Source: Paragordius varius (taxonomy: Eukaryota > Animalia > Nematomorpha). From it: 64,000 bases of DNA. The notes under the pieces were generated by a model. That model saw only the letters and a list, made by a program, of their open reading frames with translations, was not told the origin of the DNA and made no database searches. Each line of letters opens with the position of its first letter. Within the stretch, counting starts at the first letter, position 1. The position numbers were made by a program, and so were the translations under genes. The stretch is from assembly GCA_964247055.1 (NCBI GenBank), contig OZ176060.1:682001-746000 (forward strand), given 5' to 3'. Shown here piece after piece: positions 255-64,000 of this stretch.

Positions 255-780
255 TTCAACAAATCAATCAATAATGTACTTTTTATAATATTTTACAAAT
301 TTGCTGGGTATAATTATACCCTTTTTTCAATCAAATCTTACATCCTTACCCCTTTAAAAATAAATTAATCAATAATGTACTTTTTTTAATGTTTAACAAA
401 TGAATGTTTGTATATACCTCGTGGATTATTATTTCAAATCACCTGTTCAAATCAGCTGATTATATCTTAAATTTCAAAAATTAATCAATTAATGTACTTT
501 TTATAATTTTGTTTTACAAATTTGCTGGGTATAATTATACCCTTTTTTAAGATCAAATCTAAAATTTCAAAAATTAATCAATTAATAATGTTCTTTAATG
601 TTTTATAATGTTGTTTTACAACAATGTTTATATATTGTGCCTCGTGGATTATTATTTCAAATCAGCTGATTAAAAACATTTATAAATACCCCTGTGAAAT
701 AAAATAAATGTACTTTTAATAATGTACTTTTTATAATGTTTTAAGCAACATTGTTGTCTGTGAATAACTAAATTTCGATT
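255..780. repeat. Degenerate ~100-130-bp tandem repeat containing a 16-bp palindrome
   Basis: aataatgtactttttataat-like core at ~269, 371, 490, 585 and 707-720. GGGTATAATTATACCC at 306-321 and 527-542. cctcgtggattattatttcaaatc at ~418 and ~640. Confidence 0.7.
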
Positions 781-1449
781 TTCAAAAAGTAAAAAAAGTA
801 TTTAATCATTTATTAATATTATTTTATATTTTAAATCTAAATTTATTATTATATATATGTATGCAAATGACATTGCAATTATTTTACAACTATATATTTT
901 TTCAAAATATTTTGAATCTCTTGAAATAATTAAATCTTAAAATTTTGAAAAAACAATTTTTAGTTTAACTAAGATATATAAACTACATTTTTACCAAATT
1001 ATTGTTTTTAAATAATAAAAAGGCCTTAAAATTTCAACAAACTGTATTTATAATTTTGTTTTATACAAATTTTCCTATAAATTACTATATTTTAATTTTA
1101 AATTTTAAAATTATTTAATCATTTATTAATATGTCACCTATAAAAGGGTAATTAACCCCTATTTTTAAGATTAATTTCAGAATAATTAAAATATATATAT
1201 AAATTAAAATAATATATAAAATAAAATAAAAAAATGTAAAATTAATAAAATTAAATTAAAAAATTAAAATATTTATAAAAAAATAAAATAATATATAAAA
1301 TAAAATATAGACCCCTTTAATATTAAAATTGAGGTTTTTAAATAATAAAATATTGGCGTTATTTAAATAATAAAATATTGGCGTTTTTTAAATAATAAAA
1401 ATTTAGAATTAATAAATAATTAAAATATTGGGATTTTTAAATAAAAAAA

Positions 1450-1575
1450 ATAAATATATAAATTCGATTATAAAAATAAATAAAATTATTAAATATTTAA
1501 ATAATTTTAATTAAATTTCATCTTTTTATACATTGTTTCATGAATTAATTAAATTAAATTGTACAATTATATTAA

Positions 1576-1613
<38 letters not shown>

Positions 1614-1777
1614 TAATTATATTTTATATTTTATTATTTTTTTTGAAAAAAAAAAACTTAAATATATTAATTCGATATAAAAATAAATAAAATTTAAATA
1701 TTTTAATAAAATTTTATATATTTTATCTTTTTATACATTGTTTTAAGAATAATTAAATTAATTGAAACAATTATTTT

Positions 1778-1835
<58 letters not shown>

Positions 1836-3619: not shown

Positions 3620-4230
3620 TGATAAAACATGAAAATATAAAAGACCTTCAAAAGACAACCCCATAAAACATTATTTTTAATGAATTGATTAATCAGCTGA
3701 TCTGGAAAAAATCAGCTGATTTTAAAAATATTTACAATATTAATGAAATTATACTATGGACAAAACGGTGTAAAAAATATAAAGACAAATATTTTTCCTT
3801 AAAAGACAACCCTTTACTTTTTAAACCTTAATTATTTAAAATATAACTGATAAATCAGCTGATCTGCAAAAAATTATTTGATTTTAAACCTATATATATA
3901 TATATATATATATACAATAAAAATTAAAATTATACTATAAAAACGTGTAAAAATGTAAATACAAATATTTTTATCAAAAGACAACCCCATAAAATCTCAT
4001 TAATTTTAAAATAAAACTTGATCAGCTGATCTGCAAAAAATATTAAATTTTAAACCTATATATATATATATATATAAGAGTAAAAATTAAAATTATATAC
4101 AGACAAAACGTGTAAAAAATATATAAAGACAAATATTTTTTTCTAAAAAGATAACCCTTTTACTTTATAAGATATTAATTTTAGAATAAAACTGATTTAT
4201 CAGCTGATCTGCAAAAAATTTTATTTTTAA

Positions 4231-4269
<39 letters not shown>

Positions 4270-4743
4270 GAAATTATATATACTATGGAAGGACAAAACG
4301 TGTAAAATTATAACAATTTTTTATTGAAAAAACCTTATAAAACCATATTTATTTTAGAATAAAACTGATTAATCAGCTGATCTGCAAAAAAACCTTTATT
4401 CTAAACTTATATATATAGAGTAAAAATTGAAATTATACGGACAAAACTTGTAAATATATAAAGACAAATAATTTTCCTCAAAAGACAAAAACCTATAAAA
4501 CCTTAATATTTTTAAAATAAAACTAATTAATCAGCTGTGCAAAATATTATTTGATTTTAAATCTATATATATATATATAGAGTAAAAATTGAAATTATAT
4601 ACGGACAAAACGTGTAAAAATATATAAAGACCAATATTTTTCCTTAAAAAACCAACCCCATACTTTTTAGTAAAATTATGATTTTTTTCTTAAAATAAAA
4701 CTGATTAATCAGCTGATATGCAAAAAAAATATTTGATTTTAAA

Positions 4744-4778
<35 letters not shown>

Positions 4779-5767
4779 TGAAATTATATATACTATGGAC
4801 AAACAAAACGTGTAAAATTATATAAAGACTAATATTTTTTTCTAAAAAAAACCCATAAAAATTTATTTTTTTTAATATATTTTATATTAAAACTGATTAA
4901 TCAGCTGATCTGGTAAAAATTATTTGATTTTAAACATATATATATATATATATATACAGTAAAATCTGAAATTATATACGGACAAACGTGTAAAAATATA
5001 AAGACAAATATTTTTTTCTAAAATAAAACATATTTTTTAGTTTTTATTTTTTTTAAATAAAAACTGATTAATCAGCTGATCTGCAAAAAATTATCTAATT
5101 CTAAACTTATATATATATATATATACAGTAAAAGTTGAAATTATATACGGATAAAACGTGTAAAAATATATAAAGACAAATATTTTTCTCAAAAGACCAA
5201 CAGATAAAACCTTATTAATTTTAAAATATACCTGATTAATCAGCTGATATACAAAAAATTATTTGATTCTAAACCTACATATATTTCTATTTTACATTTT
5301 ATATACTATGAAGTAAAAATATAAAGACAAATATTTTTTTAAAAAAAACCATAAAACCTTATTAATTTTAGAATATAACAGATTAATCAGCTGATCTGAA
5401 GAAAATTATTCGATTCTAAACCTCTATATATATTATATATATATATACAGTATTGAAATTATATACGGACAAAACGTATAAAAATATATAAAGACAAATA
5501 TATTTCCTTAAAAGACAACCCCATAAAACCTTATTAATTTTAAAATAAAATTGATTAATCAGCTGATCTGGCAAAAAAACATTTGATTTGAAACCTATAT
5601 ATTGAGTAAAAATTGAAATTATATATACTATAGACAAATTGTAAAAATATAAAGACAAATTTTTATTCTAAAAAACCAACCTTTTATTTTTTAAGTAAAA
5701 TCTTAATTTTTTTAAATAAAAACTGATTAATCAGCTGATCTGCAAAAAATTATTTTTTTTAATAAAC

Positions 5768-5811
<44 letters not shown>

Positions 5812-5912
5812 ACAAATAATTTTCTTAAAAAAAACATATTTTTTAAAAAATTTTGTTATTTTTATATTTAAAACTGATTAATCAGGTGATCTGCAAAATA
5901 TTTGATTTTAAA

Positions 5913-5963
<51 letters not shown>

Positions 5964-6098
5964 TGAAATTATATGAATAAAACGTGTGTAAATATAAAGA
6001 CAAATATTTTCTAAAGTAAAAACCCATAAAACCTTATTAATTTTAGAATAAAACTGATTTATCAGCTGATCTGAAAAAAATTATTTGATTTTAAACCC

Positions 6099-6146
<48 letters not shown>

Positions 6147-6811
6147 ACAGTAAAAATTGAAATTATACGGACAAATGGTGTAAAAATATAAAGACAAATA
6201 ATTTTTCCAAAAGAAAACATATTTTTTAGGAAATCTTAATTTTTTTATATTTAAAACTGATTAATCAGCTGATTTGAACAAAAACGTGTAAAAATATAAA
6301 GACAAATTTTTATTTTTTAAAAGACAACCTTTTACTATTTAAACCTTATTAATTTTTAAAAATAACTGATTAATCAGCTGATCTGAAAAAAATTATTCAA
6401 TTTTTAACCCCGATATATATATATATATATACAGTAAAAATTGAAATTATTATACGGATGACATTTAGTTTTATATTTAAAAATTTTTTTTTAATTTAAT
6501 ATTTGTTAGTTTTAATTTAATTTTAGCATAGTTTTTTATTATTTTTTTAAGTTTTAATTTTATTTAAATTTTTAGTTCTGAAAGCATTCAAAATTATTTT
6601 TTTTTTTTTAAATTTTAAAATAATAAATTTAAATTATTTTATTCTTCACCCCTATATATAGATAAGCTGAAATTATACGGACAAAACGTGTAAGAATATA
6701 TAAAGACAAATACGTTTTCTAAAAAAAAACCCATAAAACCTTATTAATTTTAGAATAAAACTGATTAATCAGCTGATCTGCATAAAATTATTTGATTTCA
6801 AATTTTTATAT

Positions 6812-6842
<31 letters not shown>

Positions 6843-7370
6843 GTAAAAATTTCATTATACTACGGACAAAACGTGTAAAAATATAAAGAAAAATATTTAT
6901 TTTTCAAAAAAACCCACATAAAACCTTAATTTAAAATAAAACTGATTAATCAGCTGATCTGCAAAAAATTTTATTTTTAACCTATATATATATATATATA
7001 TATATACAGTAAAAATTAAAATTATATACTACGAACAAAATATAAAAATATAAAGACAAATATTTTTTATAAAGATAACCCACCATACTTTATTAAAATA
7101 TTATTTTAGAATAAAACTGATTAATCAGCTGATCTGCAAAAAAAAAATTATTCTAAACTTATATATATATTTATATATATATACAGTAAAAATTAAATAT
7201 ATAGTATAAACAAAATGTGTAAAAATATATAAAGACAAATATTTTTCCTCAAAAGACAAAACCCCATAAAACCTTATTAATTTTAAAATTAAAACTGATT
7301 AATCAGCTGATCTGAAAAAATTATTCTTAACCCCTATATATAGAGTACAAATTGAAATTATAAATTATTT
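3620..7370. repeat. Satellite B, ~160-190-bp monomer with CTGATTAATCAGCTGATC box and variable (TA)n, ~22 units
   Basis: Monomer aaactgattaatcagctgatctgcaaaaaattatttgattttaaacc(ta)n cagtaaaaattgaaattatatacggacaaaacgtgtaaaaatataaagacaaat...ccataaaacc is repeated throughout. One ~200-bp unrelated T-rich insert lies at ~6460-6650. Confidence 0.92.
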
Positions 7371-7800: not shown

Positions 7801-10190
7801 TGGCTTTTTAAGATAATATTTAGATATTTTTAAAATTTCTTATTTAGTTTAATCTCAATTAGTGTAAAAATAATTAAATTTAGTTTTTAAACAAAGTTTC
7901 TAGAAAACAGCTGATTTAGTTTAAAAAATTTTCTGGAATATTCAGGTTTATAGAGAAAATATTTAAAGATTTCTTAGAATTTCGAAATTCTTATGAAAAA
8001 ATGAGTTTTTTTAAGATAATATTTTTAGATATTTTTAAAAATAAATTGTTTTTAAACGAAATTTCTAGAAATTTAATCAGCTGATTTAGTTTCAAAAACT
8101 TTTTTTATGAAAAAAAAATCGGGTTTTCAAGAAAATATTAATATTTGGATATTTCTTAGAATTTATTTCCTTATTTTAGTTTCAATTATTGTAAAAAATA
8201 AATTTAGTTTTTTCAGAAATTTCCAGAAAATATATATCAGCTGATTTAGTTTTAAAAACTTTTTTTATAAAAAATCGCGTTTTCAAGATAATATTTAGAT
8301 ATTTCTTAGAAATTTCCAACTCTTATAAAAAAAAATCGGGTTTTTAAGATAATATTTAAATATTTTTTTTAAATTCGAAATTATTATAAAAAAAAAGTTT
8401 TTTTAAGATTATATTTAGATATTTTTTAAAATTCCTTTCTTATTCTAACCTCAATTAGTGTAAAAATAATCAAATAAATTGTTTTTAAACAAAATTTCTA
8501 AAAATTATATCAGCTGATTTAGTTTTAAAACTTTTTTTATGAAAAAAAATTGGATTTTTAAGATAATATTTAGATATTTCTTAGAATTTCGAAATTCTTA
8601 TGAAAAAGGGTTTTCAAGATAATATTTAGATATTTTTTAGAATTTCTCTAAAATTAATTAGTGTAAAAATAATCAAATAAATTGTTTTTAAACAAAAATA
8701 TTTCTAGAAATAAGATCAGCTGATTTAGTGTTAAAAACTTTTTTTCTTATAAAAAAATCGTTTAAGAAAATATTTAGATATTTCTTAGAATTTCTTTAAA
8801 AGTTTTGAAATAATGAATTTTTTATAATAAAATTTTAAAAAATTATTTCCAGAAAATAAATAATCAAAAAATTGTTTTTAAACGAAATTTCTAGAAAATA
8901 AATCACCTGATTTATTTTTTAATATTTAAAAAAATCGGATTTTCAAGAGAATATTTAGATATTTCTTAGAATTTCGAAATTCTTATAAAAAAAATGGGTT
9001 TTTAAGATAATATTTAGATATTTTTAGTAAAATCTAAATTTTTATGAAAAAATGAGTTTTTTTAAAATTATAATTAGATATTTCTTAGAATTTCTCAACT
9101 TTTATGTAAAAAAATAAGTTTTTTTAAGATAATATTTAGATATTTTTAAAATTTAACTCTTATGAAAAAATCGATTTTATTAAGATTATATTTAGATAAA
9201 TTTAAAATTTTTTAAAATTCTTTCCTTATTTTAGTCTCAATTAGTGTAAAAATAATCAAATAAATTGTTTTTAACAAATTTCTAGAAAATATATCAGCTG
9301 ATTTAGTTTTAAAAACTTTATTTTAAAAAAATTAGCGTTTTTTAAGATAATATTTAGATATTTCTTAGAATTTCGAAATTCTTATAAAAAAATAAGTTTT
9401 TTCAAGATAATATTTTTAGATATTTTTAATCAAATAAAATTGTTTTTTCAGAAGTTTCTAGAAAATATGAATCAGCTGATTTAGTTTTAAAAACTTTTTT
9501 TGTGAAAAAAATGTGTTTTCAAGATAATATTTAGATATTTCTTAGAATTTCGAAATTTTTATAAAAAAATAAGTTTTTTCAAGATAATATTTAGATATTT
9601 TTTAAAATTTCTCTAAAATTAATTAGTGTAAAAATAATCAAATAAATTGTTTTTAAACAAAAATATTTCTAGAAATAAGATCAGCTGATTTAGTGTTAAA
9701 AACTTTTTTTCTTATAAAAAAATCGTTTAAGAAAATATTTAGATATTTCTTAGAATTTCTTTAAAAGTTTTGAAATAATGAATTTTTTATAATAAAATTT
9801 TAAAAAATTATTTCCAGAAAATAAATAATCAAAAAATTGTTTTTAAACGAAATTTCTAGAAAATAAATCACCTGATTTATTTTTTAATATTTAAAAAAAT
9901 CGGATTTTCAAGAGAATATTTAGATATTTCTTAGAATTTCGAAATTTTTATAAAAAAAATGGGTTTTTAAGATAATATATAGATATTTTTAATCAAATAA
10001 ATTGTTTTTAAACGAAGTTTCTAGAAAATATATCAGCTGATTTAGTTTTAAAAACTTTTTTTATGAAAAAATTGGGTTTTCAAGAAATAAAATTTAGATA
10101 TTTCTTAGAATTCCTTCCTTATTTTATTCTCAATTAGTGTAAAAATAATTAATAATTGTTTTTAACAAAAATTTTACAGAAAATGATAGT
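7800..10190. repeat. Satellite D, ~150-200-bp monomer built from ~45-50-bp subunits plus an AATCAGCTGATTTAG box
   Basis: Subunit gggttttcaagataatatttagatatttcttagaatttcgaaattcttat. Box atttctagaaaataaatcagctgatttagttttaaaaac. A near-identical ~350-400-bp block lies at ~8640 and ~9605. Confidence 0.9.
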
Positions 10191-15768: not shown

Positions 15769-18410
15769 TCAAAACAATGTTGCAACAATGAGTAAAAGTA
15801 ATGCAGAATCCAATAAAATTGTCGTCAGGTGATTGCGTGAATGAATGAATGAACCAGATGATTTCTTGGTTCCGCCCCCGTGAACAGCTGATAATAAATA
15901 TAATTTTTTAAATTTTTAAAATTTTAATAATTTTATAATATATATTTTAAATTATATTATAAATAATTATTTATAAAAAAATAAAAATATATATGATAAA
16001 AAATAAAATATATAAATTTTATTTATTCTTATTAATATATTTAAATACAGTATAAAATAATATTTAAACACACAAAAAATTAAAAAAATTAAAAAAATAT
16101 TAAAATAAAAATATATGTTAATATATATTAAATTTTTTTATTTTAACAAAGGAGATATTTAATTTATCAAAAAAATAAATTATTTAAATATATATATATA
16201 TATTATTTAATAAATTATAAAAAAATATAAAATAATAACAAAATAAATTTATTTTGTAAAAATATATAAAATATTAAATACAAAAAATAAATATTAAATA
16301 AAAATATTTTATTTAAATAATTACAAAATAAATTTATTTTTATAATTTAAATTAAAATAAAATATAAATAATATATATTTAAAATAAAAATTAAAAAGAA
16401 TTTATAAAATAAAAAAAACAAAAAAAAAACTTGGAGGCACACTGGGTGGACCAGTGGGTGATGGGGGAAGCGGGCTCGCCCCATCAGCTGGTGCAGCGGG
16501 GGGCGCTGCACTTGGGGTTGTGGGAACCGGTTCCTAAATTAAAAATTAAAAAAAAATTTTTTTTAAAAAAAATATTTTTTTAAAAAACAATTAATTTTTA
16601 TAAAAATATTATTAAAAAACAATTAATTTTTACTTATATAATTATTTTGAAATGAAAAAATTATTAAATTTTTCTAAAAATTAAGAAAAAATAAGTAAAT
16701 GTATAAAAATAAAAAAATTATTTAAAAATAATTAATTAATTTTTATCTTTTTAATATTTTTTGATTATATTTAAAAATATTTTTATATTAATTTGAAAAT
16801 CAAAAAAATTAATAGATAAGATATTTTATGATTTTTATAAATTATTATTTTTTATTATATTTAAAAATAATTTAAATTTAAAATATTTTTTATTTTTGAT
16901 TATTTTTAAATCAATTAATTTTTAAAAATTTAAAAAATAAAATATTTTAAAAATTTAAAAAAAATATTTTAAATTTAAAAAATAAAATATTTTTTATTCA
17001 AAAGTAATATTTTAACGATTAATAATTATTTTTATAATTAGAAATAAATAAAAAAAATTTATTTAAATAAATTTAAATAAACTATTTTATTTTTAATTAT
17101 TTTTTTTATTTCTTAAATATTATATACTTTTAGATATTATTTTATCAACTTTTATAATAAATATAAAAATAAAAATAAACTACAATATAAATAAAAATAA
17201 ATAAAAAGATTTAAATAATAATTTTAAAAAAATATAAATAATATAATAAATATTTTAAAATAACAAATAATAAGTATAAATAAAATTTATTTACAAGAAA
17301 TTAAAAAAATAATTTAGTTTATAAAAAAAAATAAAAATTAAAAAATTAAAATAAACTTCTCTCTTCACAATTTTGGCTAAAATCTGTTTTTTGACATTCG
17401 AAGCCTAAAAAAATTAAATATTTTAAATTAAATTAATTTTAATAAAAAAATTTATACAAATATATTTTTTTATATTTTTACAAAAATTAATAATTAAAAA
17501 TATTTATTTATTTTTAATTATAATTTAAATTAAAAAAATTATTTTTATAAAAATTATTTATTAAAATAATATATTAATTATTTTTAAAAGAATAAATTAT
17601 TTATATTTGAAAAAAATATTAACGAAATTATTAATCATAATTAAAAAAATTCACAACTCTTTTTTGTTATAATTTAAAAAAATTAAATAATTTAATTATT
17701 AAAAAACTAATATAAAATAATTTATTAAAAAATAAATTAAATAAATTAAATATAAAAAAATTGTAAAAATTACTAAATCTTAAATTAATAATTGTTAAAA
17801 TAATATATAACTATTTTTATAATAGTTAAAAAATATAAAATAAAAAAATATATAAAAAAAATAATTTTAATATTTTTTTTAAATTATAAATAATATAAAA
17901 AATGTTAATAATTTTGAACAATTAATAATATATTAATAAAAAATAATTAAATAAATTATAAAATTAAATAATAAATTTAAAAATTAAATACACAAGAATA
18001 AAATCAATATTTTTATTTAAAAAAATAAAAAATTTAAATTAAAATTGTGTATAAAATATATTTTAAATAATATCAATAATAAAAAAAAATATTTTTAAAA
18101 AAAATAAATTAAATAAATTACTAAATCTTAAATTTAAACAATTATTAATATATTAATAAAAAAAATTTTTAAATAAATTATTAATTAATTAATTTTAAAA
18201 AATATTATTATTTTTCAAAAATAAAAAAATTTAAAAAAAACTTCAAAATAAAAATAATATAAATGGTAAAAAAAATTTAAAAAAATAATTATTAATTTAA
18301 AAATTAAATTAAATTAAAAAAATAAAATAAAATTATTAAAAACTTACATCAGCTGATATTTGGAATACGATGGAAAATGCCACAAGGAATATCGGAATTA
18401 ATTTATTCAT
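15769..18410 (-). CDS. Gene 1: small secreted Pro/Ala/Ser/Thr-rich protein, probably GPI-anchored, 110 aa, 4 exons
   Basis: Exons 18410-18348, 17404-17357, 16533-16431 and 15887-15769 (333 nt), all GT-AG, phases 0/0/1 consistent. Translation: MNKLIPIFLVAFSIVFQISADASNVKKQILAKIVKREEPVPTTPSAAPPAAPADGASPLPPSPTGPPSVPPTVHGGGTKKSSGSFIHSRNHLTTILLDSALLLLIVATLF*. It has a hydrophobic N-terminus with small residues at the likely cleavage site, and a C-terminus of small residues, a polar spacer and a hydrophobic tail. Confidence 0.88.
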
Positions 18411-19653
18411 AAATTAATTTTTTATATTTATTTATTTTTTATTTAAATTAATTTTTTTTATAATTAATTTATTTTATTTTAAAATATTAATATTTTGCGT
18501 TTTTCAAAAATATTAGAATGTTCTAAATATAATATTTATGTTTATTTATAATTATTCTAATATTAAGTAATATAAATAAAAAATAAACAAAAAATAAATA
18601 AAATAATAAATTAAAAATAAATGATAAATTAAAAAAATATTTAATAATTGATGTTTTTTATAAATATTTTTATTATTAATTATATTTTTTTATTTTTTCT
18701 AGATTTAATATTAAAAATTTTTTCAAATATTTTATAAATTTTAATTTAAAATATTAAAAATTTAAAATATTTTAAATTTATAATATTTTTAAAAATTTTA
18801 AATTTGAATAAATTATATTAGAAAAAATATATATATAATATAAATATTAATATAATAATTTAAAATAATTTAATTTATATTAAATTTTTGTTTAAATATT
18901 AAAAAAATATTAACTAAAACAACAGGATTTAAAAGTAAATTATATTTTATTAAAAATTAATTATTATTAAATTAAAAACTTATTTTAATAAATTTTAATA
19001 TATATTAGAAAAAAATATATGTATATTATAAATATTATCAAATATTATATTAATAATTTTTTGTATAATTATATAAAAAATTGTAAATTATAAAAAAAAT
19101 ATTATTAATATTTTTAATAAATTATATTTTTTTAACCAAAAAAATATTAACTAAAACAACAGGATCTAAAAATAAATTATATTTTATTTTTATTAAAAAT
19201 AAAAAAAATGTAAAAAAATAAGAAAAAAAACTAAAAATTAATAAAATTAAATAAAATAGTCAATACAAATAAAAAAATTAAAAAATATTTTTTTTTTCTT
19301 TTTTTTTTAATAAATTTTAAAATTCAATAATTTATAAAACATTATTAATTTAATTCTTTAATTTTAAAAATAAATGCAGTATTATAAATAAAAAAATTAT
19401 TGAAAACTTATATTAGTAATATTTTAAAAAAATTATTTTATTAATTTAATATAAAAAATAAAATAAATTATATTTTTAACCAAAAAAATATTAACTAAAA
19501 ACAGGATCTAAAAATAAATTATATTATTTTTATAATAAAAAATAAAAAAAATGTAAAAAAATGTAATACATTGTTGCTAAAACAATGTTTATAATTATAT
19601 TTTTTTATATTTTTCTTTAGGCGAATTTTTTATTTTTTTATTTTTTAACCAAA

Positions 19654-19685
<32 letters not shown>

Positions 19686-42848: not shown

Positions 42849-44186
42849 CATCATATAAATTTTCTTTTGACCGCCATTTTGAACATCAGCTGACGGAGAA
42901 ACCAGAAACTTCCACGAGGAAAATCAGTTTTTTAAAATTTTAAAATTAAAAATTATTTTAAAATTAATATTTTTTAAATATAAAAATTATAATTTATTTG
43001 TTTTTATATTGATATAATAATTTATAATATTTTATTAATTTTAAAATACAAAATCTTATAAAATTAAAAATTAATTTATATTTATAATATATTTATTTAA
43101 TTTATTTCTAAATTAAAAATTATATTTCATAATTATATATTTTATTATTTATATTCTATTATAATATTTGAATTATTATTTATTTAAATTAAAAATTAGT
43201 TTATTAAATATTAAATTTTTAATTTTAAATAATTTATTTTTCTTATTTTTTAAAATTAAAATTATAATTTTCACTTTTTTTGTGAATAAATATTAAATTT
43301 TAATTTATATATTTTATTATTGAATAATTAATTTTTTTATAATATTTATATAATAAATATTATTTATAAAATTTTTTAATTTATAATATTGTTGTTTTTA
43401 AATAAATATTAATATAAATATATTTTTAATATATAATTATTCATATTGTTGTTTTTAATTTTTATTTAAAATAATTTTTATATGTTTTATTTTATCGAAA
43501 ATAAATTATATATATTTTTGTAAATTTTTTTTAAAATTTTTTTAAAAAATTCTTTTTTTCTTTTTTTATTTTTTTATCAAATAATTTTTAAAAATAAATT
43601 TTTTATTAAATAAATATTTTAAATAAAAAATAAAATAATATTTTTGTTTTACAAAAAAAAATATTTATTTTTATTTTTAAATTTTAAACTAAATTTATTG
43701 AAGGTGCAGACAGCCAAAAATTTGATTTTGATGGAGGCCGCCATTTTGTCTTCCGCACTTCGACAGTCCAAGATTCGTCTACTCCAAGTAAAAAGTTTTT
43801 AAATTTATAAAGTTTATTTTTTAATTAATTTTTTTATATTAAAAAACAGCTGTTAATTAATTAAAATATAGTTATAATTATATATTTTAATAAATTTTTT
43901 TAACATAATATAAATTAATTTTTATTTTTAATTAATTTTTTGATTTTTTAAAAAAATATTTAACTATTTTTAAATCAAATTTGTCTTTAAGAATAATTTT
44001 ATTTAAAAAAAATTATTTTATTTAAAATATTATTATTTTAAAAATCTTATTTTATTTTTATTTTTAATTTTTTTTGTAAAACAGCTGTTTATTGATAACA
44101 TATTTTTCTAATTAAATTTTTATTTTTTTTATTTTTAATTAATTTTTTAGAACAGCTGTTTATTAATTAAATTTTTGTATATATAT

Positions 44187-44219
<33 letters not shown>

Positions 44220-47200: not shown

Positions 47201-50200
47201 GGTGTTATAATATTTTTATTTAAAAAAAGCTGTTTTTTGAAGAAAAATACAAAAAATGACAAAATATCGGACAAAATTGAAAAAAATTGTTTAAAACAGC
47301 TGATTTGGGCTAAAAATGTTGAAAATATATAATATCCGTGAAAAATTAAATTAAAATTGTTTAAACCAGCTGATTTTGCTCTTATAAAATTCACCTAAAC
47401 AGCTGTTTACATCAAAAAGTTTTAATTTAAAATTATTTTTAGGTTTAAATTTTTTACAAAAAATTGAAATTAAATTGTGCACTCATCGATGAAATTGATC
47501 ATGACTCAGCTGTTTCTGTCATAAGGAATCCTGAAAAACAGCTGATAAAGTTTTAAAGAAAGTAATTTCAGAATTTTTGTTAAAAAGAATTAAATATGTT
47601 TAATTTAAAACATTTGTTTTTGATATAATTCTTTAAAAAAAGGCTGTTTTTCTTGAAAATTTTAAAAAATTGACAAAAAATGACAAAATATTTATTAGTC
47701 AGCTGTTTCTTATAAAAAACCCTGAAAAACACCTGAAAGTCTCCAAGAAAGTAATTTAAAGTTTTTTTTAAAAAAAATCTATAATTGTGACAAAAAACGA
47801 AAATAAAATGAACAAACAGCTGTTTTCTGAACAAAAATACAAAATATCCGTGAAAAATTGAATAAAAATTGTTTAAAACAAGTGATTGGGCTAAAAATTC
47901 AAAAAAATGACAAAAACATACATTGAATAAAAATTGACTGAAACAGCTGATTTGAGTGAAAATTGTTAAAAAATCTAAAAAAAACAGCTGATAATACTGT
48001 AAAAAGTTTAAAAAACAAATTTATTAGATATTTTTTAAATTTTTTAAAAAAATGAAAGTTCTGACGTGGCTTTTGCCCTTATAGATGAGATTGGCCATGA
48101 CTCAGCTGTTTCTGTCATCAGGAATCCAGCTGAAAAACAGCTGATTAAAATTTTTAAGAAAGTAATTTTTCAAGATTAAAAGTTTGATAAAATCTATATT
48201 TGTGACAAAAAAACGAAAAAAAAACCGTCAAAAATTGATAAAAATTCTAAAAAAACAGCTGATCTGGGTTAAAAAAATTTATTATTACAAAAAAAAAATT
48301 AAGACCAAAACAGCTGATTTTGTAAAAATCCGACAAAAACAGCTGATAATACTGTTAAAAGTTTAAAAATCAAATTTATTTTAAATTTTAAAAAAATGGA
48401 AATTCTAGCTGAAAGACAGCTGATTAAGGTCTCCAAGAAAGTAATTTTGATGATAAAAAGTTTGATAAAACATTTTTTATGAAAAACAGCTATTTTCCAA
48501 AGAAAAATACAAAAAAACGTAAAAAATTAAACAAAAATTGTTTTAAATTCAAAAAAACGAAAAAAATTGATAAAAATTCATAAAAATTGATTGAAACAGC
48601 TGATTTGATAAAATAATTTAGAAAATACAAAATATCCAAAATCTAATAAAAATTGTTTAAAACAGCTGATTTTACCATTAAATCTACAAAAAACATCTGT
48701 TCACTCATAAAGATTTAATTAAAAATTATTAGAATTATTTCGGTTTAAATTTTTTGTTAAAAAAATTGTTGAAATAAAATTTTGCCCTCATCAATGAGAT
48801 TGGACATGACTCAGCTGTTTCGGTTATCAGGAACCCTGAAAAACAGCTGATTAAGGTCTCCAAGAAAGTAATTTTTAAAGATAAAAAGTTTGAAAAAACC
48901 TTTTATGAAAAAAAATGAAAAAATTGATAAAAATTCAAAAAAACAGCTGATCTGGGCTAAAAATTTTAAAAAGTGACAAAAACCGGGAAAAATTTAATAA
49001 AAATTGATTTTAAACAGGTGATAATTTAATTTACAAAAAACAGCTGATTATATCAAAAAGTTAAAATATAAATTTATTTTATTAATTTTCTCCAAAAGTT
49101 AGTTTAAGCTTTTGCCCTCATTGATGAAATTGGTCATGACTCAGCTGTTTCTGTCATCAGGAACCCTGAAAAACAGCTTTTTTCGGAAAAAAATGCAAAA
49201 AACCTTGAGAAATTGAATAAAAATTGTTTGAAACAGCTGTTTTTAATATATTTTTTCAAAAAAAGCTGTTTTGGTTAAAAAATAGAAAAAAAGCGTGAAA
49301 AATTGAATAAAAATTGTTTGAAACAGCTGATATGAGTTAAAATTGTTAGAAATACAAAATATCGGACAAAATTTTGTAAAAATTGTTTAAAACATCTGAT
49401 TTGGATTAAAAATGTTAATAAAACGGCTGTTCATTCATAAAATTAAAAATAATTAGATTTATTTATACTTAAATTTTTCGTAAAAAATAGTTGAAATAAA
49501 ATTTTGCCCTCATAGATGAGATTGGACATGACTCAGCTGTTTCTGTCATCAGAATCCAGCTAAAAACACCTGATTAAAGTTTCTAAAAAAGTAATTTTTG
49601 GAAAGTTTTTTTAAAAAAAATTAATAATTGATTGAAACAGCTGTTTTTAATATATTTTTTCAAAAAAAACTGTTTTCGGAAGAAAATTCAAAAAAACTGT
49701 GAAAAATTGAATAAAAATTGTTTAAAACAGCTGATTTGATAAAAAAAAAAAGAAAATATAAAAAATCCGACAAATATTGAATAAAAATTCATTGAAACAG
49801 CTGATTAAGTTAAAATTGTTAAATCTACAAAAAACAGCTGATAACACTGTAAAAAGTTTAAAAATCAAATTTATTGGATATTTTTTAAATTTTTTAAAAA
49901 AATGGAAGTTCTGACGTGGCTTTTGCCCTCATCGATGAGATTGGTCATGACTCAGCTGTTTCTGTCATCAGGAACCCTGCTGAAAAACAGCTGACTAAAG
50001 TTTCTAAAAAGGTGATTTTTAGAAAAAAAATTGATATCAAAATTATGAAAAAACGAAAAAAATTGATGAAAATTCAAAAAATTGATTAAAACAGCTGTTT
50101 TCGAAAGAAATATACAATATGTGAAAAATTGAATAAAATAGATCTACAATTAACTCAGCTGTTTCGGTTATTAGGAACCTTGAAAAAAAGCAGATTAAAG

Positions 50201-53200
50201 TTTCTAAGAAGGTTATTTTAAGTTTTTTGATAGAAAATGAAAAATATTTAATTAAAACAGCTTTTTTTGAAAGATAAATACAAAAAACCGTAAAAAATTG
50301 AATAAAAATTATTTGAAACAGCTGTTTCGGTTATTAGGAACCTTGAACAACAGCTGAACATAATTAAAAAAGTATTATTTAACATTTTTATTTTAAAAAA
50401 ATCTATTTTATAAAGGAATTTTATATATCAAAACAGCTGTTTTTAATATATTTTTTTTTAAAAAACTGTTTTTATTAAAAATGATCTGGGTTAAAATGTT
50501 TTAATTATGACAAAAACTGACAAAATTTGAATAAAAATCGATTGTAACAGCTGATTTTGTACAAATCAATAAAAACAGCTGATTTATATATGATTTAGAA
50601 TTTTAAAATAAAATTGTAATTTTATACATTTATTGCCCTTATCGATGAGATTGGACATGACTTAGCTGTTTCTGTCATCAGAAATCCAGCTGAAAAACAG
50701 CTGACCAAAGTACCTAAAAAGGTTATTTTAGAAAGTCTTTTGAAAGAAATTTGATTTTAAAAATAACTAAAAAAAATTAAAAAATAAAAAAAGGAATAAA
50801 GCAGCTGTTTTTTCATTAAAAATTGATAAAATTAGAACAAAAAGTGACAAAATTGAATAAAATATTGACTGAAACAACTGATTATGATAAATTAAAAAAA
50901 ATTTAACAAAACAGCTGTTTTTTTAAAAATTATAATTTGATAAAATTAAGTCTAAGTGTTAAATCAAAAACAGCTAATTAAAGATTTTTATAACGAAAAA
51001 CAGCTGTTTATGGAAGAAAAATATAAAAAAATTAAAGAATACAGCTCTTATCATATTTCTAAATCACCTGTTTTTATCATAAATCATGAGCAACAGCTGA
51101 TCACAAGTTTTTATGGTGATTTGTCAGTTGTATTAAAGGAAAAAAATTAAGATTTCCATAAAATTAAAAAAACAGCTGTTTTTCTAAAAAATGCAACATT
51201 ATGTTTATTTCAAGTCAGCAGTAGCTGATATATATATTTTAATAATCAAAATTTTATTTATATATTTTAAATAATCAAAATTATATATATATATATATAT
51301 TTTAGATATAAAAATTAAAATTATATATCATGGAAAATATTTTTTAAATAAATTATAAAATAATTTAATATCTTTTTTAATTTTCAAAACTATAAAATAT
51401 AAATTACTTAAAATTTAAATTTTGTAAATTTATAAATATATAATATCTTATATATAAATTTTAAGTAAACCTGTTTCTAATATGTATTAAAAAATTTATA
51501 TTATAAAATATTTTTTTGGATAAATTATTAAATAATATATTTAGTAAAATAATTATAAAATAAATTATTTTTCAAAAAATTATCAAAATTAACAAAAATT
51601 TATAAAATAAATTATTTTTTGGAAAAACTATCAAATAATTATAAAATAATTAAAACGATTATATATTCAAATAATATAATAATAAATGAATAATTTAAAT
51701 TTTTCAAATATATAATTAAAATTATAAATATTTTAAATTCTTCTTATAATTATTTTAGAAACCACTATCATCTGATGGAAATGCGAAATCAGTTGATCTG
51801 CCTCCTTTTTCGCACACATTCATCCCATCAGCTGCTGTTGACTTTAGAAAATTTCAAACAGCTGTTCCAACTAATAATATTGGAAATAATAATAATTTTC
51901 AAATTCCTACTGATTATGATTTTGGTATATAATTTTATGAACAGCTGATTTTTTAATAAATTTTATAAGACAGCTGTTTTAGATATATATATTTAATAAT
52001 TTAGCTGTTTCTATATAAATTTGCATCTTTGAAAAATATATTTGAAAACAGCTGTTTTTCTAAAAAAATTCAATAAGACATGAAAATTTTCAAATTCTTA
52101 CTGATTATAATTTTGGTATTTAACTATTTTTTTCATAAAACAGCTGATATCTTATTAAATTATTTGTCTAAAACAGCTGTTTTTAGATGGATATATATTT
52201 ATTAATATATTTTTAAAATTCATTTTAGTTAAAAATAAATTTAAATTTTTTTGAAAATAAAATATATTTTAAAAACAACTGTTTTTATTAAAAATTCAAG
52301 AACATTGATATTTTCAAATTCTTACTGCTTATGATTTTGGTATTTATATATTTTTTTTATAAAACAGCTGTTTTTTATTATTCTTAAACAGCTGTTTTAT
52401 ATAAATATATATATATTAATTATTTTGTTTAAATTTATTTATATTTATAAAACTTTTAATAAGCTGTTTCTATATATATATATCTTTTTAATATCTTTTA
52501 TTTTTATTTATATATATTTAATAGATAATAAAATACATTTTAACAGCTGTTTTTGTTTATAATTCACAAAACATAATAATTTTCAAATTCCTACTGATTA
52601 TGATTTTGGTATTTTTTTTATTTTTTTCATAAAACAGCTTATTTATTTTAGATTTTTAATAATTTAATTTTTTTTTAAAGAAACCGCTTCAGATAAATAT
52701 TTTTATATAATTGTATTATTTATATAATTATTGAACTTTTAAAACAGCTTTTTATATATTTATTAATATTTTGTTAACATTTATTTATATTAATATAAAT
52801 TTAATAAATTTTAATTTTTAAAAGATATATTTTAAAAACAGCTGTTTTTACTGATTATGTTTTGGCAATAAATTTAAAAACAGCTGTATATATATATATA
52901 TATTACATATAAATTATTCTTTTAACATCTTATTTATATAATTAATAATTTTATTTAAAACTTTTATTATATTCTTAATATATTTTTTATATATTTAATA
53001 TTTTATTTAAATTTTTAAAAATAATAGATATTTTAAAAACAGCTCATTTTCTAACAAATCAAATAAAAATGATAATTTTATAATTTATTTTATCGATTTT
53101 TTTAAAGAAAATTAAAATAATTTATATTAAATATAAATTAATTTATATAAAAAACAGCTGGCTTATTAAATTTTAATATTTTTTTAATTTAAAATAAAAG

Positions 53201-59200: not shown

Positions 59201-62200
59201 ATTTTAATTTATTTTTTTAATTATATATATAAAAGTTATGTAGAAAATAAATTTTTTTTATTTATTAATAATTTTTCGTTTTTTATTTTTGAATAAAAAT
59301 AAATTTTTTTAGTCCTTTTTTGTTAAAATAAAAATAAAAAATAAATTAAAAAAATTAATTATTTTAATTTTATTATTTTATTATATCTTTCATTATTTAA
59401 AAATTTTCTTTTTTTATTTTTTATTTTTATTTATTTTTTAATTTTATTTATTTTTTAATTTTATTTAAATAAATAAAAAAATTTAACATGTTATAAATTG
59501 AATTTTTATTAATATAGAAATAATTTTTTTTAAATATATAAAAAAATTAAATATATTTAAATATTTTAAATTTTTATTAAAATATAAATTATTTTTTTTT
59601 TAAATTTCTTAATTAAATTATATAATTTTTTTTTAAATTTTTTTTTTATTTTTTAATTTTTTTTATTTTTTTAGCAAATATTTTTTTTTTAAAAAAAAAA
59701 TAATTAATCTAATAATTAAAAAAAAAAATTATTATTTTTTATTATTCAATTATTTAAAAAAAATATTTTTTTAGTTTAAAGTATATTATGTAAAAATTAA
59801 ATATAATTAATTTTTTATAAGATTTACACTATAAATATATTTTTATTAAAAATATTTTTATTTTGTGTTTTTTTAAAATTAATTTTATTGAAAATATTTT
59901 TATTTTATTTTTTTTATAATTATTAATTGTTTATTAAAAATTTTATGTATTTTTAAATTTTTATTTTTTTTCTTTATAAATATAATATTTAATATTTTTT
60001 AAATAAAAAATATTTATAAAAAAAAAATAATTATTTTTTTATTTTATTTATTTTTTTACTATTTATATTTTATAATTATTAAATTCATTTAGTTTTAATT
60101 TTTTTAAAATGAACAAATAAATATATTTTATATTTTAGTTTTTTATTTTTTTTAATTTTTTTGTTTTGTTTAATTTTTTTTAATTAAAATATATATATTT
60201 TTTAAGAAATTCAATAATTTTTTTTAATTTTTTTATTTTTATAAATTTTAAGGTTTTTTTTTATTTTTTTATTTTTTTAATTTTTTTTATTTTATTTTTA
60301 ATATTTTTTATTTTTTCAATTTTTAATATTTTTTTTTAGTTTTTGTCCCAATGAGCATAATGGCAATGAATATGGATGAATGGCAATGCGAATTCGATGT
60401 AAAATTATTTTTTAAGAAATCAGCTGTTTTTTAATTATTTTTAAATAAAATAATTTAAAAAAAAATTAAAATTATAAATATTTTGACTTTTATAAATTAA
60501 TTATTTATTATTAAATTTTAAAATCACAATTTTTTTATTATTAAATATTTTAAATTATGAAAAATTTTTTAAAATTATAATATTTTAATTTTAAATATTT
60601 AAAATTTAAAATTTTTAGATTATTTAATAATATTATTTTCAAAAATTAAAATAAATAATTATTTTAATATTCTAATTCATAAATTTAATTATTTATAATT
60701 TATTTAAGATTTTAATTTTTATTTAAAGAACAGCTGTTTATTAAATGTTAATTATATATTAAAATAATTATAATCTTTAATATTTTCTAAAAAAAATTAT
60801 TTTCATATTTTTCAAAAACAGCTGTTTTTATTTCCACTAGAGTATAAAAATAAATGCAAACACGAAAGAAATTAATTTTAAATGCAAATCAGCTGATGAT
60901 TAATTAATCAATTAAAAACTAAAAAAAAATATTTATAAATTCAAATGATAAATTAATAATTTTATTAAATAATTAATTATAAAATTATTTATTTAATATA
61001 TAATATCAAATATTTTTATATATTATACATTTAAAAGAATCAAAACAGCTGTTTTTTCTTAAATATTTTTTATAAAAAAAAATAAAAAATTATATTATAA
61101 TTTTAATATTCTAAAATATATATATTAATAATAAATTTAATTATTTCATATTATAAATATTATATTTATAATTTTTAAAAATCAGCTGTTTTCAATATTT
61201 CCACTAGAGTATGAAAATAAATGCAAACAGGAAAGAAATAAATTTTGAATGCAAATCAGCTGATGGAATATATCCTATGCCGGGAAAGAATTGTGTTTGG
61301 TAAATAAAATTTAAAAAAAATTTTATAAAAAAAATTTAAAATAATTTTATAAAAAAAATTAATTTAAAATATTTTTTATAAAAAAAATTAAAAAAAAATA
61401 AAATTATTTATTATAAAATATTTTTAAATATTTTTAAAATAATATTTTATGTAAATTTTTTATTTTTTGAAAAATAAATAAATTTATTTTAAAAAATTTT
61501 ATAAATACATTTTTTTATTTTTTTTTAAATTATTATTTTTTTTACATTTTTTATTATTAAAAAAAATTGAAATTTAAAAATTAATGAAAATTGAATGATT
61601 TAAAAAAATATTTTTATAAAAAAAAATAAAAAAATAATTTATAAAATAAATTTATTAAAAAAATTAAAACATTTATTTTTAAAATAAATTTATTTTTTAT
61701 AAAAATATAAAAATATTAAATTATTTTTGTTTTAATTTTTTAATAAAATATTTTAAATTAAATATATTTATAAAAAAACATTTTTAAATAATTAGTTTTA
61801 ATAAAATAAAAAAATTTAAAATTTAAATAAATTTTAAAAAACTTTTTAAATATTATTTTTTAATCAAATTTTTTATTTTATATCTAAAAAAATAATTTTT
61901 TATTTTTTTTTATAAATTAAATAATATATTATTATATAAATATTTAAAAAATTTTTTATTTATATAATTAATTTTTTATATTTTAAATAAATATTTTTTT
62001 AAATATTATTATTTAAATATTTTTATAAAAAAAATTATATATTAGTAATTCAAATAAAAAAAAATATTTTTTAATAAAATTTTTTTTTTATTTTCTGTTT
62101 TCAGGTATGTTGCTTGTTCCAATTTCTATGCTTGGTTCATGTGTTGTCCACATGGAACACTTTTTGATGTTCGGTCAAACATTTGCGAAACAGCTGATAA

Positions 62201-62219
62201 AATAACATGTGATTATTGA
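21136..62219 (+). CDS. Gene 2: large, probably secreted low-complexity protein with a Pro/Thr/Ser/Arg-rich linker and a C-terminal peritrophin-A (ChtBD2/CBM14) chitin-binding domain, ~951 aa, 34 exons
   Basis: Hand-built exons: 21136-21316, 22131-22181, 22963-23005, 25099-25207, 28208-28324, 29672-29732, 30266-30315, 31100-31215, 33791-33933, 35123-35221, 35836-35886, 36518-36571, 38580-38665, 39412-39469, 40091-40144, 41290-41375, 42204-42261, 42846-42926, 43704-43787, 45356-45438, 46361-46498, 50974-51129, 51759-51924, 53839-53901, 54394-54445, 55360-55440, 56206-56264, 56741-56773, 57412-57480, 58356-58409, 58734-58787, 60340-60398, 61208-61299, 62105-62219. The total is 2856 nt, all GT-AG, with one open frame across 33 junctions. 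Least certain: the start codon (21136 vs 21262) and both ends of exon 22 (alternative acceptor 51004). A hydrophobic stretch IFFLFSIFIFLNF precedes IHS-QN. Confidence 0.85.
24011..24895 (+). pseudogene. Three partial copies of the exon 4 5' end inside intron 3
   Basis: tttag|TAAAGTTGACATAGTCAATGAAAGG at ~24011, tttag|TAGAGCTGACATCTTATTGGTTAAAGAAAGGAGAATT at ~24643, and ctgacatcttatt at ~24879. Confidence 0.85.
25464..27610 (+). pseudogene. Six or more partial copies of the exon 4 3' end (NPNPQIDFPGNF) inside intron 4
   Basis: Copies at ~25464, 26218, 26581, 26898, 27082 and 27571. Three of them retain the gta donor. Confidence 0.9.
25650..26180. repeat. Intronic A-rich ~150-190-bp tandem triplication
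   Basis: aaaaaacgaaaaaaaattaaaaaaaaaatatttttttattaaaattaaaataataaacatttattttaaaattaaaataaattttgttttt occurs three times. Confidence 0.8.
30821..33480 (+). pseudogene. Echoes of exon 8 (5' end, 3' end, middle) and seven echoes of the exon 9 5' end
   Basis: Exon 8-like at ~30823, ~31387-31436 and ~32142. tttag|CATTTCNGTWAAAATAATTCCTGG at ~31858, 32038, 32356, 32543, 33071, 33306 (AG lost) and 33444. Confidence 0.9.
34086..34665 (+). pseudogene. Four echoes of the exon 9 3' end
   Basis: atgttaaccgaac... at ~34087, 34289, 34447 and 34640. The first two keep AAAA|gta. Confidence 0.8.
35890..42261 (+). repeat. Tandem duplication of a three-exon cassette (exons 12-14 and 15-17)
   Basis: AEQNLISGGKHMEIQTEK/AEQYLISGGKHMEKQTEK; IQSEKSTIPFNFWKETADIGKDIKTDVLK/IQPEKSTTPFNFWKETADIGKDIKTDVLK; LIERNITDDYEPKTPEFSK/LIEKNTTDDYKPKTPEFGK. 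Exon lengths are identical (54/86/58). Shared intron anchors at 36105/39621, 36253/39812 and 36370/39930. Confidence 0.92.
36660..37480. repeat. Intronic T-rich ~430-bp tandem duplication
   Basis: Block starting ttttataaattttttaatatttttttttatattttttattaatatttttttcatttatt at ~36661 and ~37102. Confidence 0.75.
46500..50930 (+). pseudogene. Array of ~13 copies (~300-450-bp period) of the exon 21 3' part (ALIDEIGHDSAVSVIRNPEKQLIKVSK) plus spacer, in intron 21
   Basis: Copies at ~46742, 47059, 47476, 47697 (degenerate), 48051, 48396 (deleted), 48781, 49111, 49503, 49901, 50152, 50316 and 50633. Confidence 0.93.
52080..52870 (+). pseudogene. Four echoes of the exon 23 3' end (FQIPTDYDF|gt)
   Basis: ttttcaaattcYtactgattatgattttggtat at ~52087, 52311 and 52580, and a truncated copy at ~52849. 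Confidence 0.85.
60815..60903 (+). pseudogene. Upstream echo of the exon 33 5' half with an intact acceptor
   Basis: tttccactag|AGTATAAAAATAAATGCAAACACGAAAGAAATTAATTTTAAATGCAAATCAGCTGATGATTAA versus the functional exon at 61208. Confidence 0.88.
61250..62210 (+). other. Peritrophin-A/ChtBD2 domain split over exons 33-34
   Basis: C-KSADGIYPMPGKN-C-VWYVA-C-SNFYAWFMC-C-PHGTLFDVRSNI-C-ETADKIT-C has spacing C-x13-C-x5-C-x9-C-x12-C-x7-C, matching the established six-cysteine peritrophin-A pattern, with conserved aromatic residues and a CPxGxxF motif. Confidence 0.93.
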
Positions 62220-62359
62220 CAACAGCTGTTATTGAATTGTTATTGAAATAAATTTATTAATAATTTATAATTTTATATAATTTATTTATTTGATTATTAA
62301 ATTTATTAGTATTTTTAATTTATATTTTTAATGATTTTTCTAGAACTAAATTTTTTTTC

Positions 62360-62750
62360 AAAAAAATGCGAAACAGCTGATAAAATAACATGTTATTACT
62401 GAACAGCTGTTATAATTAAAAATTTAATAAATTAATAAATTTTTAATAATTATTTATGTTATAAATATATAGACATATATATATATATATATAGTAATTT
62501 TTAATTAATATTCTTTAAATATTGAACATATATTTTCGAAAATACTAAAATTGCGAAACAGCTGATAATGTGATTACTGAACAGCTGTTATTGAATTGAT
62601 ATTGAAATAAATATTATAATTAATTGATTTATATAATCAATTATATATATAATTTATGTATTATTAATTTTTTTTACATATTTATTATTTTAGATATATT
62701 TTTAATAAAAGTAGATAAAATTACATGTGATTCTTGAACAGCTGTTAATA
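62360..62750 (+). pseudogene. Three echoes of the terminal exon end, including the stop codon
   Basis: gcgaaacagctgataa...atgtKattactgaacagctgtta at ~62368 and ~62553, and a more decayed copy at ~62713. Confidence 0.8.
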
Positions 62751-62799
62751 ATTATTTACGTTATATAATTTATAAATATAATTAATATTGAATATATAT

Positions 62800-64000
62800 A
62801 ATTTGGTTTAAAATGGTTAAAAATACAAAAAATCCGACAAAAATTGCATAAAAATTGATTGAAACAGCTGATTTATTTGAGCTAAAATTGAAAAATACAA
62901 AATATCCGTAAATTGAATAAAAATTGTTTGAATTTTGTAGAAAATTCTGAAAATTGACAAAAATTGTAAAAAAATTGAATAATTAAAATAATCTACCAAA
63001 AACAGCTGTTCATATCAAAAAGATTTGATTTATTATTAGATTTATTTCTTAAATTTTTTGTTAAAAAAATAGTTGAAATAAAATTTTGCCCTCATAGATG
63101 AGATTGGTCTTGACTCAGCTGTTTCTGTTATTAGGAACCCAGCTGTATAAAATAGCTGACTAAAGTTTCTAAAGTAATTTTTCAAGATTAAAAGTTTGAA
63201 AAAATCTATATTTGTGACAAAAAAACGAAAAATAAACCGTCAAAAATTGATAAAAATTAAAAAAAAATGACAAAAATTGATAAAAATTGAAAAAAAACAG
63301 CTGATTTGGTATAAAATTGTTAAAAATACAAAAAATTCGACAAAAAATGAATTAAAATTGTTTAAAACAGCTGATTTTTTTATTAAATCTACCAAAAACA
63401 GCTGTTCATTCATAAAGATTTAATTAAAAAAAAATAGAATTATTTCAATTTAAATTTTTTGTTAAAAAATTGAAATAAAATTTTGCCCTTATCGATAAGA
63501 TTGGTCATGACTCAGCTGTTATTGTCATCAGAAACCCTGAAAATCAGCTGATCAAAATTTCTAAGAAGGTTATTTTACAAAGTTTTAAACTTTAATAATT
63601 CTTTGAAAAAAAGAAAAAAAATGAAAAAAATATAAAAAGTTGATTAAAACAGCTGATTTGGTTTAAAATGGTTAAAAATACAAAATTTGAATAAAAGTAG
63701 TTTAAAACAGGTGATTGGGCTAAAAATTCTAAAAAAATGACAAAGACTGACAAAATTCAAAAAAAAATTGAATCAAACAGCTGATTTTTATTAATTTAAA
63801 GAAATAAAAAATAAAAAGTGGTGATTGTCTAAAAAGTTTAAAATTAAATTTATTCTTTTTTCAATATATTTTAAATTTTTTCAAAAAATGAAATTATTTT
63901 CATTCATCGATGAAATTGGTCATGACTCAGCTGTTTCGGTTATCAGGAACCCTAAAAAACAGCTGATTAAAATTTCTAAAGTAATTTTAAAAGATTTTTT
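62800..64000 (+). repeat. Second array of the exon 21-derived repeat, downstream of the gene 2 stop and running off the window
   Basis: Coding-like blocks at ~63085, 63481 and 63898, with the same spacer as 46.5-50.9 kb (tctatatttgtgacaaaaaaacgaaaa; aacagctgttcattcataaagatttaatt). Confidence 0.92.

Follow-up and report, generated by a model that had tools for sequence, protein, structure and literature searches.

The window and the abundance of CAGCTG

This study concerns the hexamer CAGCTG in a stretch of 64,000 nucleotides (nt) from the hairworm Paragordius varius (GCA_964247055.1, contig OZ176060.1, positions 682,001 to 746,000), which is called the window hereafter. The window carries a + strand gene of at least 26 small exons, extending from about 28 to 62.2 kb, together with two unrelated satellites (A and B), an array of exon-like units and several intronic echoes of exon edges. 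It is 89% A+T and about 11% G+C, with 3453 C (5.4%) and 3553 G (5.6%). An exact count of 205 CAGCTG was obtained between positions 453 and 63965 (no strand assigned), with the consensus AAW-CAGCTG-WTT (W being A or T) and a spacing of one per about 90-300 bp across exons, introns and satellites.

With reference to random expectation, a base-composition model of order 0 predicts 0.11 copies and one of order 1 predicts 0.16, while 100 dinucleotide-preserving shuffles gave 0.14 with a maximum of 2, and shuffling confined to blocks of 50-200 nt, with the motif's own letters retained, gave 0.4-0.7. CAGCTG is over-represented at least 290-fold relative to the local-composition expectation, and the estimate in the preliminary description of this DNA, of about 200 copies where well under one would be expected, agrees with our 205 against 0.14-0.7. 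The other G/C-containing hexamers are far rarer, the remaining frequent ones all overlap CAGCTG, and the motif accounts for 820 of the 7006 G/C bases. It had also been claimed that the motif forms G/C islands within A/T intron, and this was recovered in two AT-rich stretches: 8 motifs carry 34% of all G/C in the intron at 43.8-45.34 kb (6.1% GC), and 6 motifs carry 32% at 52.9-53.84 kb. The density is nevertheless very uneven, as the equally AT-rich control stretch at 16600..28200 (11.6 kb, 5.8% GC, no strand assigned) holds just 2 CAGCTG where about 60 are predicted at the density of the 43.8-45.3 kb intron. The word is therefore not uniformly generated in A/T DNA, which argues against a uniform mutational generator. 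This stretch also holds a few tiny G/C islands, and a long intron, upstream exons or intergenic DNA are all conceivable for it. Our literature search, including hairworm genome preprints, turned up no paper linking CAGCTG with Nematomorpha, and we found no description of a hyper-abundant palindrome of this type in an animal.

During the collapse of repeats, the core and 2 nt on each side were masked, and the ±50 nt flanks were aligned with composition-aware scores calibrated on shuffled flanks and clustered by single linkage. This protocol replaced a plain BLAST collapse, which over-merged the sites, with neighbouring windows overlapping and flanks of low-complexity A/T. With the threshold set for 4e-4 false positives per pair, 59 flank families were obtained, 47 of them singletons, and the loosest threshold tried still left 30 families against fewer than one expected. 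Since 30-59 flank families remain, the excess of CAGCTG, which is at least 45-fold after the collapse, is independent of repeats; the preliminary description had allowed that the enrichment might vanish at this step, and it does not. About 130 of the 205 copies belong to three large families, namely satellite A, satellite B and the exon-like array, and it might be supposed that the abundance comes only from the amplification of a few repeat families or of a mobile element carrying the motif. This explanation is contradicted by the number of independent families, by the 47 singletons, whose common sequence ends at about ±5 nt, and by the motif being far better conserved within families than the remainder of the unit, so that pure hitch-hiking appears very improbable. 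With respect to miniature inverted-repeat transposable elements and transposon termini, the 47 singletons showed no common sequence beyond about ±5 nt, although target-site duplications were not searched.

Extended site, conservation and variant spectrum

Among the 47 independent singleton sites, 45 have A at position -2 and 44 have T at +2, with positions -3 to -5 being mainly A and +3 to +5 mainly T. The form A-W-CAGCTG-W-T fits 161 of the 205 sites, in line with the flanks given in the preliminary description, and the most frequent flanks were AAA.ATT (25), AAT.ATC (23), AAA.TTT (21), AAA.ATA (20) and AAT.ATT (12). The satellite sites use ATCAGCTGAT, and the genic sites mostly AAACAGCTG(A/T)T. 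The element is a palindrome of 10-12 bp, AAW-CAGCTG-WTT. The possibility that A-run and T-run flanks are a general property of G/C islands was rejected, as such flanks are missing around isolated G or C bases of the gene.

For the analysis of conservation, repeat copies were gathered by profile search without requiring the presence of the motif, and the G/C columns of the motif were compared, in alignments of paralogues, with all other columns having a G or C consensus. In satellite A, 126/128 bases were conserved in the motif columns and 503/666 in the others (p 9e-12); in satellite B, 79/84 and 240/337 (p 3e-6); in the spacers of the array, 148/160 and 157/243 (p 2e-11); and in its exon-like part, 129/135 and 314/376 (p 2e-4). 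Conservation in these four families amounts to 92-98% for the motif columns versus 65-83% for the other consensus G/C columns, while the fifth family, intron echo C (42/44 versus 70/80), shows the same trend without significance. The ±2 columns are also near-invariant in the repeat-family alignments. Comparing positions in the same repeat copies, divergence is 5-16 times lower at the motif than at other G/C positions; its bases thus do not mutate like other G/C sites, contrary to what the preliminary description had named as the outcome against its idea, and its impression that the hexamer is exempt from the surrounding decay is upheld in four families out of five.

The variants of the motif follow a distinct pattern. 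Beside the 205 intact sites there are 75 relatives with one mismatch, and 42 of these 75 changes hit the two central positions (p 7e-5). CACCTG (12 copies) and CAGGTG (13 copies), which had been picked out earlier as the main variants, are indeed the sole enriched ones, each at about 110 times expectation; their frequencies on the + strand are about equal, and they occupy the same flanks and the same repeat columns as CAGCTG. The products of AT-ward transitions (TAGCTG, CAACTG, CAGTTG and CAGCTA) add up to 17 together. Swaps between G and C number 25 at the central positions 3/4 and 4 at the outer positions 1/6, and because outer swaps are rare in comparison, the protecting agent reads CA-SS-TG (S being G or C) specifically. 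This is the grammar of an E-box: CA..TG is kept, a GC centre is preferred, and a CC or GG centre is tolerated. Generic GC-biased gene conversion was also considered and rejected, given that it predicts equal tolerance of swaps at positions 1, 3, 4 and 6. Decay by CpG methylation was rejected as well, with a CpG observed/expected ratio of 1.45-1.8 in the window, and as CpG is not depleted there is no sign of general cytosine methylation here. A sequence-specific agent either maintaining or actively generating the hexamer had been proposed in the preliminary description; its maintenance is supported by the conservation and by the variants, whereas uniform de novo generation is opposed by the 11.6 kb stretch with two motifs.

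Coding exons, splice junctions and repeats bearing the motif

The coding frames of the gene were derived from the sequence, with one exon possibly mis-framed. Within about 794 framed codons (about 2.4 kb coding), 28 motifs were counted, and they fall in all three reading frames. Gln-Leu pairs are written CAG-CTG in 9/12 cases, while away from the motif about 28% of the Gln codons are CAG and about 7% of the Leu codons are CTG. Again, 17/28 Ala codons (61%) are GCT within xCA-GCT-G, with recurrent TAD, SAV and SAD tripeptides. Because the choice of Gln-Leu and Ala codons follows the motif, the force works at the nucleotide level and thereby shapes the protein. The last coding exon (62100..62219, + strand) encodes a CBM_14 chitin-binding domain; one motif lies in its segment ...CETADKITC... 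and a second follows the stop codon closely.

Judged from sequence only, exons appear to start at CAG/CTG (the slash marking the junction) at 35120..35125, 35833, 36515, 39409, 40088, 42201, 45353 and 57409, all on the + strand. In about 8 of the 26 exons, the motif's own AG is the only possible acceptor (TTTTTAAAACAG/CTGAT...), and the reading frame opens there. The similarity between paralogous exons starts exactly at the motif in 39409 versus 42201 and in 36515 versus 40088. Exon ends of the form CAGCTG/GT are likewise predicted on the + strand at 28299..28304 and 53896-53901, with CAGCT/GT at 56260. As the motif supplies 16.5% of all AGs, the 8/26 acceptors at CAG/CTG are just marginal (p 0.05), and 13 exons have ordinary TTTTAG acceptors and no motif in the preceding 70 nt. 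We also noticed pairs of motifs 13-18 nt apart within or at the edges of exons (28286-28304, 33873-33891, 35120-35142, 39077-39100 and 57409-57432); the spacer of the pair at 35120-35142 is GTAATAATTCTCAG, with GT and AG at its ends. A block of three exons (…SAEQNLISGGKHME…, …FNFWKETADIGKD… and …QLIERNITDDYEPKTPEF…) is tandemly duplicated, at 36515-39470 and 40088-42260, the exons still being similar and the similarity of the introns being lost.

Satellite A consists of monomers of about 175 bp at 3624..7362 on the + strand, with further blocks at 10184-11403 and 12131-12586, and carries one TTAATCAGCTGATCTGCAAAAA box per monomer; beside the conserved blocks of each monomer (ACGGACAAAACGTGTAAAAATATAAAGACAA) there is also a variable-length (TA)n microsatellite. 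Satellite B, of about 177 bp and built from 60-bp sub-repeats, lies at 7883..10115 on the + strand with a second block at 13050-13954 and carries AAATAAATCAGCTGATTTAG per unit; three of its copies show CACCTG at the CAGCTG column. Though unrelated, both satellites have monomers of nucleosome size with a single motif in each, and the same box is conserved in the diverging monomers of A (126/128) and B (79/84). Confinement to a (peri)centromeric satellite was not observed, the motif being equally dense in the exons and introns of the gene. The exon-like array (…LIDEIGHDSAVSVIRNPEKQLIK…) with its spacers extends over 46361..51105 on the + strand and has four motif columns per unit, two in the spacer and two in coding sequence (SAV and QLI); its unit recurs past the stop codon of the gene, at 62813..63979 on the + strand. 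The 46-residue array exon (46361-46498) gave five HMMER matches among 1.84 billion representative proteins, and the two that were traced are giant, adhesin-like bacterial surface proteins with HYR / SprB-type repeats (E 1e-27 and 2e-13). A single copy of this exon had no Pfam match, and the protein matches suggest a hyalin-repeat-like extracellular domain.

Copies of exon edges were seen in the introns. In echo family C (31824..33828, + strand), the acceptor region and the first 30 nt or so of the exon at 33790 are copied, and in each copy ATCAGCTGATTT precedes the copied TTTTAG by 17-35 nt. The exon sequence ...CATCAGCAGATTT at about 31180 (exon 31140-31198) is found as ...CATCAGCTGATTT at 32169, in the region of family C, within a homologous stretch of about 50 nt, so the echo placed at about 32166 by the preliminary description is real. 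Nine motifs lie on the + strand in the intron of about 6% GC at 43847..45358 and its 3' end, eight of them within 43.8-45.34 kb and the last, at 45353, being a probable acceptor; several, for example those at 44823 and 45070, are echoes of the exon start at 45353 (CTGATAATATAAT). Most intronic copies can be traced to echoes of exon starts or ends, with the motif at the 5' edge of the echo. Duplicated exon edges and satellite monomers seed the motif, which is then kept while the sequence around it decays. Its presence in unrelated repeats, which had been remarked on before, holds for satellite A, satellite B, the 453/663 repeat and the exon array.

The putative reader, rival explanations and other features

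The reading that we prefer, and to which we give somewhat less than an even chance, is that a symmetric dimer reads the motif on double-stranded DNA according to an E-box grammar, that purifying selection keeps the site, and that duplication of exon edges and satellite monomers has multiplied it. CAGCTG would be the core of the 10-12 bp palindromic cis-element AAW-CAGCTG-WTT, and a putative symmetric, dimeric and sequence-specific factor would read it on double-stranded DNA. Functional sites would be retained by purifying selection, while the unconstrained G/C next to them would decay through a strong AT-ward mutation bias, and the copy number would rise whenever exon edges and satellite monomers that already bear the site are duplicated. 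At satellite monomers and at very small exons poor in GC, the element might mark or slow transcription and organise chromatin, but this is a guess. That the reader is a protein, that it belongs to the basic helix-loop-helix (bHLH) class and what its binding brings about are points that we infer.

The site of AP-4/Cropped, a bHLH leucine-zipper (bHLH-LZ) factor, resembles the element in its CAGCTG core (205 copies here), in being palindromic, which in the case of AP-4 follows from its being an obligate homodimer, and in keeping CA..TG while tolerating CACCTG as a minor alternative. The CA-SS-TG specificity is also close to that of MyoD- and E-protein-type bHLH factors. The extended form AWCAGCTGWT is probably the published promoter E-box consensus of Drosophila, and a literature search for this string found nothing. 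AP4 is reported to bind exclusively as a homodimer, and in chromatin immunoprecipitation sequencing CAGCTG was bound, with CACCTG at lower frequency (PMC3698521, PMC7914591). CAGCTG also serves as a core-promoter element of Drosophila housekeeping genes, and in both fly and human its frequency peaks upstream of start sites (PMC3375229, PMC1779564).

Several observations weigh against our preferred reading. One site per 90-300 bp far exceeds any documented usage of a transcription factor. Known CAGCTG elements are located near promoters (PMC1779564, PMC3375229), whereas the sites of the window neither centre on promoters or enhancers nor keep to an ordinary regulatory density, spanning instead exons in all frames, introns, the 3' flank and satellites; unlike the AP-4 site and the promoter E-box, the motif also reshapes protein composition, and its factor is putative. 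The symmetry of a homodimer site is seen at ±2 (45/47 and 44/47), but ±1 and the A/T runs are strand-asymmetric in this + strand gene, with A at -1 in 34/47 and T at +1 in 20/47 (p 0.006), and A..A flanks outnumber T..T flanks by 18 to 1 within 28-46.3 kb. Strand-asymmetric flanks are not what a purely symmetric DNA reader predicts and do not fit it, and they leave room for a component that is RNA-level or transcription-coupled. The preliminary description had noticed neither this asymmetry, nor the position of the motif at likely splice junctions, nor the origin of most intronic copies in duplicated exon edges. It is also conceivable that the conservation among paralogous copies could reflect sequence-specific repair or conversion and not selection.

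Such a repair process is central to one rival explanation, in which a modification or short-patch repair system, for instance an orphan methyltransferase with a mismatch endonuclease as in Dcm/Vsr, recognises CAGCTG and restores or creates it regardless of function, so that the word accumulates everywhere, coding sequence included. To our knowledge, no drive of this kind has been described in animals, and we know of no animal example of a very-short-patch repair signature. Protective repair of a palindromic word, as with CCWGG in enterobacteria, would slow the decay of motif G/C, though the effect of Dcm/Vsr on word frequencies is modest and, unlike there, no methylation signal is seen here, the CpG ratio being above 1. 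The cyanobacterial palindrome HIP1 (GCGATCGC) behaves alike, being 15-300-fold over-represented, conserved and tied to orphan methyltransferases (PMC5861425, PMC4390886). Both are short palindromes that exceed expectation by orders of magnitude, occur within genes in several reading frames and are more conserved than neutrality would predict; in the window the excess is at least 290-fold, about 794 codons contain 28 copies spread over three frames, and conservation is above that of the neighbouring positions in paralogue alignments. HIP1 differs in being bacterial and GC-rich and in its link to two orphan methyltransferases and perhaps transformation, whereas our motif belongs to an animal, in a nuclear genome that has spliced genes and about 11% GC. 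A drive of this type would account for the hyper-abundance in each sequence class and reading frame at a cost to protein composition, for the scarcity of AT-ward variants (17 versus 205 intact) and for the motif outlasting other G/C columns in non-coding satellites, but it conflicts with the roughly 30-fold difference in density among AT-rich stretches of equal composition, with decayed copies persisting at 3-6 times expectation and with the undepleted CpG (1.45-1.8); on balance we consider it unlikely, yet deserving of attention. Slightly more credible, though still doubtful, is an animal "iterated palindrome" system, with a dedicated reader of AAW-CAGCTG-WTT, either an architectural bHLH protein or a modification/repair enzyme, as a eukaryotic counterpart of HIP1 linked to splicing; it would involve an override of codon and amino-acid choice, the holding of G/C islands, and a coupling to exon definition and to exon-edge duplication. 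The CENP-B box and the centromeric box of Meloidogyne offer another parallel, as two unrelated satellites of about 175 bp share one box per monomer as their best-conserved part, but here the box also occurs outside satellites, and coding exons and introns hold it at no lower density.

A signal in RNA would have the sense sequence AAAACAG/CUGAU act as a 3' splice site, a CURAY-type branch site or an exon-definition enhancer for the tiny exons within AT-rich introns, or would have self-complementary copies of the motif pair and so bridge long introns. Such a role is consistent with about 8/26 exons apparently beginning CAG/CTG and 2-3 ending CAGCTG/GT, with the motif 17-35 nt upstream of the copied acceptor in family C, with the asymmetry of the flanks in the sense direction and with the motif being densest in or beside exons (28 in about 2.4 kb coding). 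We nevertheless judge it improbable. The flanks at ±2 are symmetric, and on the sense strand CACCTG is as frequent as CAGGTG; the 8/26 acceptors are marginal (p 0.05), given that 16.5% of AGs belong to the motif; 13 exons have a plain TTTTAG acceptor and lack a motif in the 70 nt before it; the majority of coding copies are internal to exons; and the motif is equally protected in two satellites that may or may not be transcribed. Yet less probable is a site of breakage or recombination, at which a nuclease or a transposase-derived enzyme would cut between CAG and CTG, the repair yielding the echo duplications and the motif spreading with the joints. The arrays are rich in motifs and most intronic copies mark the 5' edge of an echoed exon start or end, as this would predict; but the unit boundaries of tandem arrays cannot be phased, and the apparent edges match the start of constraint (the exon start) and are not necessarily joints. 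A cut site would also be expected to erode, yet the motif is the best-conserved part of the copies, and the exon-internal copies in three frames would be left unexplained.

If the word is actively kept every few hundred bases, a force beyond protein function and ordinary regulation would shape the genome and the proteome. The window would then provide a eukaryotic system for studying hyper-abundant palindromes, whose function in bacteria has resisted explanation for decades, and the motif could explain how exons of 40-130 nt are recognised when the introns around them have about 5% GC. Unless the motif is modelled, bias is to be expected in gene finders, codon-usage models and selection scans applied to hairworm genomes.

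Two further features lie outside the repeats described above. A tandem repeat of 88 bp at 14421-14679 has a unit with an internal inverted repeat (CCATACACTACTG...CAGTAGTGTATGG) that is capable of forming a hairpin, and it contains no CAGCTG. An isolated island of 105 nt and 63% GC at 16432-16535, amid pure A/T, contains one CAGCTG. Rfam and tRNA scans of the window, this island included, gave no match. Each strand of the island folds into a closed four-hairpin junction (z -3.4 for + and -4.7 for -), and the island may be an undescribed small RNA gene.

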